From Stylophora pistillata (lineage: Eukaryota): a stretch of DNA of 63,829 nt. The notes beneath the pieces are model-generated. The model was not told the origin of the DNA and made no database searches. It saw only the letters and a program-made list of their open reading frames with translations. The stretch is taken from assembly GCF_002571385.2 (NCBI RefSeq), contig NW_019217982.1, positions 47,715 through 111,543 on the forward strand, given 5' to 3'. Positions 5,384 to 14,839 of this stretch are shown piece by piece (the stretch's first letter is position 1; each line of letters starts with the position of its first letter). A program made the position numbers and the translations under genes.

Positions 5384-8300
5384 TTAATGTGGATATTTTC
5401 GTTTACGGCTGCTTTTACGGACTTTGCCATGAGTCCATCTTCTAGGTGGAGCAGAGAGACAACCAGATAAAGACTCCGTTACCGAGTAATGGCCCATGGC
5501 ACCAAACGAAAATGGTGCTGGACCGGATGAGTCATCAGGATCCATCCAAATAAGGTTACAATTGTTTTGCTTCACAAAGCAGTCCAACATATTTGTGATC
5601 CTTGGGTCTTTCCGGTGGCGAGAGTTCACCACAATGCACTCAACATTCTCAGATAGGCTGACTGGTCCGTGAATTTGAACCTTTCGTGAAGATATCGACT
5701 CAAATATAAGAAACCTAGTGGGTTAGTTATCAGTTCTAGCTCAGTTTGAGTTCGTGCTAGGGACCAAGAAGACTGACGAAATGATATATACAAACGTTTG
5801 AAATCAACTATCATGGAAAAAACAACAAAAACAATAACAAAAGTTAAAACAAAACAAAACATGAAGAGAAAACAAACAAAACATATTGATTTTTGAGGAG
5901 GGACGAAAATTTACAAATTTATGGCCCTCGGAGGTTCTGTGAATTCAACCCAGGCTGCAAAGGCAAGATTCGAGCATTTTCATCGCATACAAATCGATTC
6001 CTTACGATAACTTGTTTTCCTCGCTTCACATATTCAACAAGTTCAAAATGGCACATTGTTGTAGGTGAAGGCACTGTCCAGCTTATAAAAGAACATCTAA
6101 TGCCGAGATTCCAGCAGAAAATACTTTCATTATGACCAACAACAAAACGGAACATTTAACACGGAACAGAGTACAAAATCCTTTTACCTCTTTGTACTGT
6201 GAGATACAGTCTGATCGATGAAATGGAACCTTTCCAGTGGCTACATCCATAATCTGGGGAATTGGAGAGAAGTGGTTGACAATTTTGTCATACATAGAAC
6301 ATGCAGACGTTTGTCGTATATCTTGACTCTAATAATGACTTCCACTACGGTCGTCGAGGTGTCAGTCACTAGTACCAATTTCAGTCCTTCTCTGGACTAC
6401 TCTGGGCTGAACGATCACAAAACACAATAAAATGGAAAATGCTGGCACAAAAAATTCGTAATCAATGAAAAGAACGAGTAAAGGAGACAGAAAAATAGGA
6501 GCAAGCAGAATAAAATATCATATTAATATCATTCACCGCAGTTATCTCCATGTCTGTGTATGCAAAGAGGACGTTTTCATAATGTTCACAACACGACAGT
6601 TTGACCCCTTCACCAGATGTGTCCATAGAAGCGAACGTGGTGCGAAGACGAACTTTTTTGAGCTAAAGCAAAACAGATAGGATAATTTTAAAATAAACCT
6701 CTCCCACTTATTAGGTGACATTTACACATGCATAAACCTCTCTCACTTGTTCGGTGACATTTACACATGCATAAACCTCTCCCACTTGTTTGGTGACATT
6801 TACACATGCATAAACCTCTCCCACTTGTTTGGTGACATTTACACATGCATAAACCTCTCCCACTTGTTTGGTGACATTTACACATGCATAAACCTCTCCC
6901 ACTTGTTTGGTGACATTTACACATGCATAAACCTCTCCCACTTATTTGGTGACATTTACACATGCATTAGGTGATGTACTTATTGACTATGTGGGAGGGC
7001 CGAACTAAAATAAAAATATTTGGCTCGAGGTCATGACGCACTATGCCAGAGTAACAACTGCCATTTCCCCCCCAAAGATTGACAAAGGCTTGGGACATAG
7101 AATCAATCTGAGTCCCTTATGAGGATTCGAACCTCCAGCAGTCCGTCCAAATAGAGCCTCCCCAGCGGAATAAAGAGTTTTGTGCGCTCCACTCGGTGCT
7201 TGTTTATTTGCTACGTCCCGAGGAAAGGTGCAGTGGCAAGGCCCATTCCTTCGTTCTCACTCTCTGGTTACTGGCTGTGAATAGCAGAGGACTGTGTCTG
7301 TTTTCAAGCAGGGATTGTATGTCTCTATGTCTAAGATACTTTTGACATTCTGGTGGAACTTGGTGAGGATTCAAACCTAAAACGTTTGAATATCAACATC
7401 AAACGCTCTGCTCGACCTGGTGAGGACTCAAAACTCACAATTTTGAATATCAACATCAAGTGCTAGACCAGCCGAGCAAAGAGAAACTCTTTAAATCAAC
7501 CTGGTGAGGATTCAAACCTCATTCTCTTCAATTTCCCTTTCAAATGTTCTACCAGCTGAGCCTAAAAAAGGCACTGAGTCGACTTCCGTGAGGATTCAAA
7601 CCTCGCTCTATTACATTTTGCTAAAAATGTTCAACAAGCTGAACAAAAAAATTCAATGGAATGGCCACTGATAAGTGAATTAGCTTTTTGTCGACCATGT
7701 AAGCGTTGTTAGTTTTCTTAGAACCTCGGTTATGTCATTGATGTTCGGGGGCACGCGGACACTTTTGCGTCGTACATACTGATATATGATAAGTGTATCT
7801 CCATTGCGACAAGTTACTCCACAACTTGGTGGCTAGAACACTCTCCTACCTGGTATATTTTCTTTTATTAAATGGGCGATTTATAGTTTACTTGGTGAAA
7901 TTTCCTCACACAAAAGTATTCAAAAATGCTAACCTGTAGAAAAGAATCTCCATAAGGAAAACAGCTTCTCACACCACGAGGATCGCCAACTACAAAAGGC
8001 AAATAGCACAGATAAGAAGGTCTTCATACTCTCGCTTTCACAAGTATTCAGTACTCACAGCAATTTGATGAAAGAAAAATTAGTCCACTTTGGAAGAGAT
8101 ATTAAAAAGTAATCAAGGTTTTCATTGGCTTTGTTCCTCCTGGCTTAATGATTGGTTCCAACATCACACGCCACCTTTTTAACCAGTCAGAAACTGCACC
8201 TACGCGTGACTTGGTCACGTGCACTTTCCCGCGCTCGAAGATAGTTATGTGTATTAGCAATTGGCACGTTATGGCATTCCCTCGTGTTCCTCTGCTGAGC

Positions 8301-14300: not shown

Positions 14301-14839
14301 ATCGGGACTTGACTACGAGGTAAATGTAAATGTTGTTTTATGGAGGGTTCAGAACATTTAAGCTGGATTAAATAAAAAGGAATGACCGAAAAGATGAAAT
14401 ACAATTAGAGTTGCACAAAAGTCACTGGATTAGGCGTGATCAGTCTGGTTGAGATGTACGTAAAGTTGTATAAAAACTTCCTCAAGGTTATGAGGAAACC
14501 TCGTGCTGTCAGAACTCCCGATATCTTTAAATCGCTTTGGGATATTATAAGAAGCCCTGCTATCTCTACATTAATTGCAATCAACCCAGACTACCAGCAA
14601 ATTGTTGGATGGAACTTAAACCAAACAATTTCAATCTATTTGAAGACAGATCGATAGTGCTCTTCCTAATAATCTCACCTAGCTCGAGAATCATCTTCGC
14701 TTGAGATGTTCAACCTACAGTGCACATTGCTCACATGGCTGTCCTTTAAAGTGATGTTACAGAGTGGTGATCGACCAATCTTGAATGGACCTGTCACGCG
14801 AAGATCGTAATCTTTGTCTAAAAGGTTGGAATCCAACAT
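5384..14839 (-). CDS. FHA domain + 9 C2HC (UBZ4/Rad18-type) zinc fingers + DUF3626-like domain protein, ~1,441 aa, 11 exons
   Basis: Exons (minus): 14839-14679, 14197-11284, 10878-10762, 10584-10417, 9718-9528, 9145-8989, 8738-8666, 7989-7934, 6662-6537, 6253-6188, 5680-5384. All GT-AG, phases match, total 4326 nt open. FHA motifs IGRS, VSNVH, DHSSNGTW. Nine C-x2-C-x11-H-x3-C fingers. C-terminal motifs IHINLDR, YRNRFETGTSGG, RKSWEDRIFNSAY, ERVKYGVLN, YGDSFLQL, RTTFASMDTS, YKEVQIHGPV. Confidence 0.88.
6693..6965. repeat. 39-bp minisatellite, 7 copies, intronic
   Basis: Unit ataaacctctcccacttgtttggtgacatttacacatgc repeated head-to-tail without spacers, in intron 8 of the FHA gene. Confidence 0.95.
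7119..7645 (-). repeat. Cluster of 4-5 degenerate tRNA-derived units
   Basis: Minus strand has B-box-like GAGGTT(C/T)GAATCCTCA near 7120, 7365, 7420, 7505 and 7590, with A-box-like GCTCAGCTGGTAGAAC / GCTCGGCTGGTCTAGCAC upstream of some; no intact cloverleaf. Confidence 0.6.
8366..8517 (-). repeat. Penelope-associated repeat fragment with a minimal hammerhead-like motif (core variant CCGACGA) plus a partial tandem copy
   Basis: Minus 8458-8425 reads GCT-CCGACGA-AGGGCTAACGCTC-GAAACGTC-AGC; same family at 26307-26379 and 44891-44987. Confidence 0.65.
9921..10359 (-). mobile_element. tRNA-derived SINE
   Basis: Minus head ACCGCCTCCTGGTTAGCTCCATTGGTTAGAGCG...GGTTCGAGCCCCGGCCGGACCAA (A and B boxes), (TTTCAC)n tail at 9921-9941; an older related fragment lies at about 9790-9905. 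Confidence 0.8.
11284..14197 (-). CDS. 2.9-kb exon 2 of the FHA-zinc finger gene (second half of FHA, 7 zinc fingers, acidic disordered linkers)
   Basis: Matches the 947-aa ORF 11275-14118, extended 5' to the acceptor at 14197 and cut at the GT donor after 11284; includes a poly-Asp/DDDDK tract at about 11440-11560. Confidence 0.9.

Follow-up and report, generated by a model that had tools for sequence, protein, structure and literature searches.

The ADP-ribose writers known in animals are the PARPs, the ecto-ADP-ribosyltransferases (ecto-ARTs), some sirtuins and Tpt1. APLF and CHFR, which join an FHA domain to PBZ zinc fingers, as well as PNKP and APTX, have an N-terminal FHA domain followed by small fingers in disordered linkers, an arrangement typical of DNA-damage adaptors. 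Here we describe a gene of the coral Stylophora pistillata that appears to bring the two kinds of module together. It lies on the minus strand at positions 5384-14839 of a 63,829-nucleotide stretch of contig NW_019217982.1 (the window), and a family profile search of the genome found it as a single copy. We consider it likely that its product, about 1,429 residues long, is a modular reader-writer protein in which an FHA domain and nine zinc fingers precede an ADP-ribosyltransferase (ART) domain resembling that of the Salmonella protein SopF.

SopF is a 374-residue injected bacterial effector that ADP-ribosylates the V-ATPase subunit ATP6V0C (PMC8820735). The Pfam family DUF3626 (PF12294) spans its residues 178-338 (PMC6682159). 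NAD+ is bound by Y224 and Y240 at the nicotinamide and by E325 at the N-ribose, and activity requires all three residues (PMC11937434). The coral domain has in common with SopF (PDB 7DN8, 7DN9) the Pfam family, the fold and the NAD-binding Tyr, Tyr and Glu. Unlike SopF, which has neither FHA domain nor fingers, it is part of an intron-bearing host gene.

The likeness to the other systems is looser. To APLF, CHFR, PNKP and APTX we found a sequence relationship in the FHA domain only; the PBZ fingers of APLF and CHFR are C2H2 readers of poly(ADP-ribose), whereas the coral fingers are CCHC and number nine, and the coral protein has a writer domain of its own. PARPs such as PARP1, PARP11 and PARP14 also fuse an H-Y-E type ART domain to reader modules (WWE, BRCT and zinc-finger domains). 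However, they form a different ART family with a regulatory domain that the coral protein lacks, and no PARP chain was among the matches listed in structural searches with either of our models.

Enzyme, FHA and finger modules

We searched the exons one by one and used two public proteins, P0197 (RefSeq LOC111332596, S. pistillata) and P0007 (Oculina patagonica), together with a coral transcript, L002, as stand-ins for the spliced product. P0197 has 423 residues and is 100% identical to the window in clean exon-to-exon matches. Against PF12294, which has a gathering cut-off of 27 bits, it scores 70.8 bits (E 1.3e-19), bearing out the C-terminal DUF3626 domain that an initial annotation of this DNA had proposed. 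Single exons fell below that cut-off, and a six-frame search of the whole genome with PF12294 returned one weak exon match of 13 bits. The Pfam model missed the short exons because it is too bacterial; a family profile built from 32 relatives (A1) worked, matching exons 5, 6, 7, 9 and 11 of the window. The initial annotation had called DUF3626 an uncharacterised family, which no longer holds, since the family includes SopF. Its proposal of an FHA reader and a C-terminal enzyme in one gene stands, and the enzyme can now be named as a member of the SopF ADP-ribosyltransferase family.

Profile A1 finds SopF (chains 7DN8 and 7DN9) with E 2e-12. The profile was needed for this, as a phmmer search with the Oculina protein against PDB sequences gave no match. 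AlphaFold models of the domain reached a pLDDT of 86 for the ortholog and 82 for P0197 (core >95). With both, the top structural match was SopF: Foldseek gave E 1.8e-10, and VIA gave Z 21.4 for the ortholog model and 21.7 for the P0197 model. The superposition has an rmsd of 2.9 Å over approximately 240 residues, covering SopF 80-374. The next folds score far lower, with OspC3/CopC and DarT at Z ~10, Tpt1 at Z 7-8 and CteC at Z 4. NCBIfam and PADLOC held no match for the enzyme domain, and the ESM Atlas returned bacterial DUF3626 clusters only, with no eukaryotic range among them.

In an HMM alignment to 7DN8 and 7DN9, SopF residues Y224, Y240 and E325 pair with residues that are invariant in A1. 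A second alignment of 41 sequences (A4) again has the Glu without exception, and at least 90% of its sequences keep both Tyr residues and a further His. This near-invariant His ends the first core strand and precedes the others, giving the order H-Y-Y-E. In the predicted strands of P0197, H180 stands at the end of strand 177-181, Y237 lies within 236-240, Y255 is conserved, and E325 starts 325-328. As modelled, the site is of the H-Y-E ART type, with His, Tyr and Glu in order on core strands. SopF seems to have an Asn in place of the His, in a part of the HMM alignment that scores 1.9 bits and is unreliable.

At the other end of the protein, exon 1 alone scores 26.7 bits against the Pfam FHA profile (PF00498; cut-off 20.7 bits), over its positions 2-30. 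Positions 32-66 are matched by the first part of exon 2 (E 0.038), and the joined domain scores 43.5-45.8 bits in orthologs. The Arg, Ser, His and Asn of FHA domains hold phosphothreonine. The residues of this site, G-R, S-x-x-H and N-G, are present in the coral protein (...IGRSP..., ...VSNVHC... and ...SSNGTW...), and the N-terminal FHA domain of the initial annotation is thereby upheld.

Between the two domains, the pattern C-x2-C-x11-H-x3-C occurs exactly nine times, the number first proposed. No other match turned up in any of the six frames of the 63.8-kb window, nor did one in 50 shuffles. Fingers 8 and 9 are modelled as beta-beta-alpha units with pLDDT ~90, and the linkers around the fingers are long, acidic and probably disordered; those of exon 2 are acidic and Ser-rich. 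Of the profiles searched, zf-C2HC_2 (PF13913) matched four of the nine fingers at E <=1, with a best value of 3e-6, and finger 8 (P0197 residues 27-50) exceeded its 27-bit cut-off with 29.8 bits. Other matches included Znf_XAF1_N (3.7e-7) and zf-Di19, most of them below curated cut-offs.

The fingers had initially been assigned to the Rad18/UBZ4 type (PF18439). They do share CCHC ligands and similar spacing with the UBZ4 fingers of Rad18, WRNIP1 and FAAP20, but neither profile nor structure agrees: the zf_UBZ profile gave a best E of 0.089, for one finger of nine. A profile of the nine fingers matched only CTCF ZF11 in the PDB and no UBZ structure, and the weak structural neighbours of the fingers (Sgf11/Sgf73, TRAF-type and CTCF fingers, Z 2-3) include no UBZ. 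What the UBZ4 label captures is a resemblance in spacing only. The same C-x2-C-x11-H-x3-C spacing suits XAF1, zf-C2HC_2 and TRAF-type fingers, although XAF1 itself has no FHA or ART domain. For a predicted complex of finger 4 (12472-12621, minus strand) with zinc and the coral's ubiquitin (L005:1495-1722:+), the score was 0.16, the mark being 0.34; this speaks neither for nor against binding.

Gene model, orthologs and RNA joints

Six-frame reading of positions 5000-15500 showed one minus-strand open stretch of 975 codons (11278-14202), with short open pieces below it. Searching proteins from this open stretch, we found three coral proteins with both FHA and DUF3626: P0002 (Pocillopora damicornis pdam_00018200, partial), P0007 (O. 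patagonica LOC144651186, 1,557 residues; FHA 43.5 bits, DUF3626 77.5 bits) and P0014 (a JGI protein of 1,409 residues). As tblastn queries against the window, these gave eleven colinear blocks, and reading the boundaries yielded one gene of 11 exons (Table 1). All ten introns are GT-AG, no exon contains a stop when read in its inherited phase, and the exons sum to 4,290 nt, that is, 1,429 codons and a stop. At the protein level, exon 1 shows 78-80% identity with the N-termini of the Pocillopora and Oculina proteins, and exon 2 is 66% identical to the Pocillopora protein.

Table 1. Exons, fingers and the two read-through introns of the S. pistillata gene, in window coordinates (E values are those of the family profile)
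Feature	Positions	Strand	Content
Exon 1	14839-14679	-	ATG at 14839; N-terminal half of FHA; codons Arg 14773-14771, Ser 14731-14729, His 14722-14720; GT donor
Intron 1	14678-14198	-	GT..AG
Exon 2	14197-11284	-	2,914-nt open frame; C-terminal half of FHA (Asn codon of NGT 14154-14152), KRKRK, linkers, fingers 1-7
Fingers 1-4	13419-13360, 12873-12814, 12759-12700, 12576-12517	-	in exon 2
Fingers 5-7	11988-11929, 11847-11788, 11358-11299	-	in exon 2
Intron 2	11283-10879	-	spliced and retained forms
Exon 3	10878-10762	-	finger 8; RNA joints on either side; in P0197
Finger 8	10848-10789	-	in exon 3
Exon 4	10584-10417	-	finger 9
Finger 9	10536-10477	-	in exon 4
Exon 5	9682-9528	-	first helices of the SopF-like domain; E 3e-8
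Exon 6	9145-8989	-	start of ART core; ...ITIHINLD... and THYRNRFE motif; His codon 9105-9103; E 2.4e-20
Exon 7	8738-8666	-	Tyr codon 8684-8682, counterpart of SopF Y224; E 4.2e-4
Exon 8	7989-7934	-	Tyr codon 7954-7952, counterpart of SopF Y240
Exon 9	6662-6537	-	ART core (LKKVRLRTTF...); colinear with orthologs; E 1.3e-11
Exon 10	6253-6188	-	last codon Glu 6190-6188, counterpart of SopF E325
Exon 11	5680-5384	-	QIHG motif, end of ART domain, basic tail with RKRK; PF12294 positions 184-227; TAA 5386-5384; E 8.9e-14

The initial annotation had also arrived at 11 exons in one frame, with a product of about 1,441 residues. Exon number and frame stand, but the length does not. None of four RNA runs uses its acceptor at 9718; all four join 10417 to 9682, as does P0197, and in both P0197 and L002 the exon 4/5 boundary reads ...HD/LSA.... 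Acceptor 9682 shortens the protein by twelve codons, to 1,429 residues.

The RNA data were Logan contigs from four runs of four studies (X1, X5, X11 and X13), two of them recorded as poly(A) RNA; such contigs drop rare variants and do not allow levels to be measured. The exon 2/exon 3 joint (10878/11284), which the initial annotation had singled out for confirmation, is present in three of the four (X11, X13 and X5). The joints of exon 3 to 4 (10584/10762), 4 to 5 (9682/10417) and 5 to 6 (9145/9528) occur in all four. The contig pieces halt at the exon-6 donor, the stretch compared having extended to 8900. Because the joints from exon 2/3 through exon 5/6 are found in contigs, the fingers and the enzyme exons lie on the same RNA. 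The corresponding claim for the whole gene is borne out in that part, and a join of exon 1 to exon 2 was not seen. One run, X5, also skips exon 4 in frame (joint 9682/10762), which would remove finger 9. Within exon 2, an imperfect 12-15-nt repeat at 11435-11559 codes for an Asp/Lys-rich run of the DDDDK type; across 11433-11560 reads seem cut and the repeat skipped, and the continuity of the contigs is broken there.

The transcript L002, a 5,028-nt intron-less coral contig from a JGI sample, carries FHA, nine fingers and DUF3626 in one frame (FHA 45.8 bits, the domain being cut by the contig end; DUF3626 72.7 bits). Genomic contigs from two other corals, L003 and L004, hold the same exons in the same order with introns present, so L002 is a spliced message. 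The nine fingers are conserved in its species and in Oculina. We also considered two proteins of approximately 1,000 residues without DUF3626 (P0009 and P0015) as a conserved short isoform and rejected them: they are open reading frame (ORF) calls on the big exon, since their source contigs, L003 and L004, are genomic and contain introns.

RefSeq represents the gene in S. pistillata by P0197 alone. This model starts at a Met 19 codons upstream of the exon 2 end and continues through exons 3-11 with junctions identical to ours. It thus lacks the FHA domain and seven fingers, and is N-terminally short by about 1,000 residues (423 versus ~1,429). The fused gene model of the initial annotation is better than the RefSeq one and is consistent with that of Oculina, which is full length.

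Eukaryotic relatives of the SopF-like domain and its possible role

A search with the domain returned 1,596 cluster representatives at E <=0.001, 343 of them at E <=1e-30. The named matches come from corals, the sponges Oopsacas minuta and Amphimedon queenslandica, and dinoflagellates (Durusdinium, Prorocentrum and a Symbiodiniaceae gene model), and marine protist transcriptomes are represented as well. No bilaterian name occurs among the family matches, though most matches are nameless. In a tree of the domain, corals group with sponges (SH-aLRT 96), apart from a dinoflagellate branch.

The domain is joined to a variety of partners. Among 71 long relatives we found EF-hands in 12, WWE in 11 and E2-like domains in two, along with RING/IBR, RanBP fingers, BRCT, Tudor/Agenet, WW and FHA domains; shorter relatives carry UBA and WWE domains. 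The finger pattern of the coral protein recurs ahead of the ART domain in 22 of the 57 members whose N-terminal part is long. These finger-bearing members cluster in the tree, requiring 3 label changes compared to 8.5 with shuffled labels. The WWE, UBA, E2-like, RING and BRCT partners suggest that the family works in signalling through ubiquitin, ADP-ribose and phosphorylation, without naming a substrate.

The initial annotation knew of no vertebrate, fly or worm protein of this layout. Indeed, we found no characterised protein that has it, but it extends beyond cnidarians, as the sponge Amphimedon has a protein (P0287) with FHA, three fingers and DUF3626. The coral protein is an architecture not previously described within a known enzyme family. 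The literature mentions of DUF3626 that we found concern Salmonella only, a 2025 survey of ART families mentions neither SopF nor DUF3626, and our literature searches found nothing that joins SopF, ADP-ribosyltransferases, WWE and eukaryotes.

We envisage that the C-terminal 250 residues are catalytically active as an NAD+-dependent ADP-ribosyltransferase, probably of the mono type. The FHA domain would bring it to partners marked with phosphothreonine, and the finger array could act as a multivalent reader of a second mark, for which ubiquitin is a candidate. The enzyme would then ADP-ribosylate a nearby target. Given that the fingers match no UBZ profile or structure, guidance by ubiquitin is something we infer; the fusions of relatives to UBA, E2-like, RING and WWE domains help it only indirectly. 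Both basic stretches of the initial annotation were found, KRKRK at residue 162 and RKRK within the basic C-terminal tail, which is modelled with low confidence (pLDDT <50). As sequence features, they fit nuclear import, and binding to acidic lipids could be an alternative. The DNA-damage role that the initial annotation had suggested is possible but unsupported.

More tentatively, SopF may not have arisen in isolation in bacteria but may belong to a large eukaryotic family whose endogenous ADP-ribosyltransferases occur in sponges, corals, dinoflagellates and other protists. Animals might then have, beside PARPs and ecto-ARTs, a third class of ADP-ribose writer, represented by the coral protein, whose targets could be ubiquitin or ubiquitylated and phosphorylated molecules. 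It would be one version of a CCHC-finger and ART module that the family connects to readers of phosphorylation, ubiquitin, ADP-ribose, calcium and chromatin, and SopF might be a mimic or transferred copy of a host-type enzyme. If true, a SopF-type transferase in animal and protist genomes, with intact NAD-binding residues and with FHA, WWE, UBA, BRCT and E2-like modules attached, would add a writer family to eukaryotic ADP-ribose signalling. SopF, so far regarded as a bacterial effector, would gain eukaryotic relatives, and ideas on its origin and on the logic of its substrates could be tested. For coral biology, the gene is a candidate in stress or immune signalling that is expressed and present as a single copy.

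Splicing and alternative explanations

Several observations weigh against the proposed reader-writer protein. Some concern the enzyme and the fingers: the coral domain is only ~20% identical to SopF, SopF needs the host cofactor ARF1, and the fingers are unlike UBZ profiles. In the literature we searched, no eukaryotic member of the family has been studied. The others concern the message. The exon 1/exon 2 joint (14679/14197) is absent from the contigs of the four runs, which cannot prove absence, and intron 1 is read through in all four (X5, 11561-14871; X1, 11561-14431 and 14408-14877; X11, 13879-14767; X13, 14519-14899). A retained intron 1 brings a stop two codons beyond the donor. A full-length message bearing the FHA domain has thus not been seen in S. 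pistillata. Intron 2 is retained at a contig depth near that of the spliced form (87.5 spliced versus 101.2 retained in X11; 28.5 versus 51.9 in X5), with unspliced contigs at 10852-11313 (X11 and X5) and 10761-11432 (X1). In that form, the frame ends at a TAA at 11277-11275, leaving out fingers 8 and 9 and the enzyme domain.

These findings raise the possibility that the full-length FHA-to-ART protein is minor or conditional, with most transcripts keeping intron 1, intron 2 or both. Such transcripts would give truncated forms, or the message would be held unspliced until a signal arrives. Contaminating DNA does not account for the retained introns, because the RNA depth of intron 5 is zero in all four runs, and the RefSeq model, with its 423-residue C-terminal protein only, fits the same view. 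On the other hand, the contigs drop rare forms and give no levels, so the missing joint is a caveat and not a refutation. Exon 1 is conserved in its protein and in the correct phase for exon 2, L002 contains the two exons joined in another coral, and the Oculina RefSeq model is full length. We regard a minor or conditional product as a serious but rather unlikely alternative to the fused protein as the main product. Introns 1 and 2 flank the 2.9-kb exon 2 on either side and are both read through; they could be detained introns or subject to regulated splicing.

Other alternatives accept the fused protein and change what its last domain does. Like DarT and Tpt1, the enzyme might modify not protein but nucleic acid, at the ends or bases of DNA or RNA, with its fingers serving to bind that nucleic acid. 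CCHC fingers are often nucleic-acid binders, both DarT (Z ~10) and Tpt1 (Z 7-8) are among the structural neighbours after SopF, and some relatives carry BRCT, Tudor or chromo-like domains. However, SopF, by far the closest at Z 21.7, modifies a protein, as do OspC3 and CopC at Z ~10, and the acidic linkers beside the fingers are unfavourable to nucleic-acid binding. We find a nucleic-acid target improbable.

It is still harder to see the SopF-like domain as a non-catalytic module that binds NAD+ or ADP-ribose, making the protein a pure scaffold. Pseudo-ARTs do occur in other ART families. But Y-Y-E is invariant across the 32 sequences of A1, and the conservation of these residues and the His in A4 is what selection on an active site would be expected to produce.

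We also think it very unlikely that the coral protein is an endogenous SopF-like regulator that ADP-ribosylates the V-ATPase c subunit and controls ATG16L1 recruitment, for example at the symbiosome or phagosome of a symbiotic coral. SopF is the only characterised relative, with ATP6V0C as its target (PMC8820735), and its C-terminus is required for membrane association (PMC6682159), while the coral protein has a basic C-terminal tail. Yet an identity of ~20% is uninformative on substrate, the FHA, BRCT, Tudor, WWE and UBA partners suggest that signalling takes place in solution or in the nucleus and not at membranes, and the family occurs in non-symbiotic sponges too.

Finally, we find it just as unlikely that there are two separate genes, one with FHA and fingers and one with fingers and DUF3626, as the 423-residue LOC111332596 model would imply: that model begins inside the open 2.9-kb exon 2 and itself uses the exon 2/3 junction, exons 2 and 3 are joined in RNA contigs, and the orthologous transcript and gene models are fused.

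The introns of the gene contain two repeats. At ~9900-10400, intron 4 holds a repeat whose summed contig depth is enormous in each of the four RNA runs, reaching ~3e5, and at which many contigs end loosely. Its other copies run past 10318 with a common consensus of ~30 nt. The window copy probably derives, in truncated form, from a repeat that is abundant and transcribed; searches of it with Rfam and ARAGORN returned nothing. In intron 8, a tandem array at 6693-6967 (39-nt unit, 7.1 copies, 97% matching) produces spurious ORFs of 76-92 residues in three frames and is noncoding for this gene. Elsewhere in the window, a 582-residue ORF at 51395-53143 on the minus strand encodes a rhodopsin-family seven-transmembrane receptor (PF00001, E 6e-18), an unrelated neighbouring G protein-coupled receptor gene. 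On the plus strand, a 142-residue ORF at 15269-15697 has no Pfam match and diverges from the 5' end of the FHA/ART gene; it may be the first exon of a neighbour gene sharing its promoter region.

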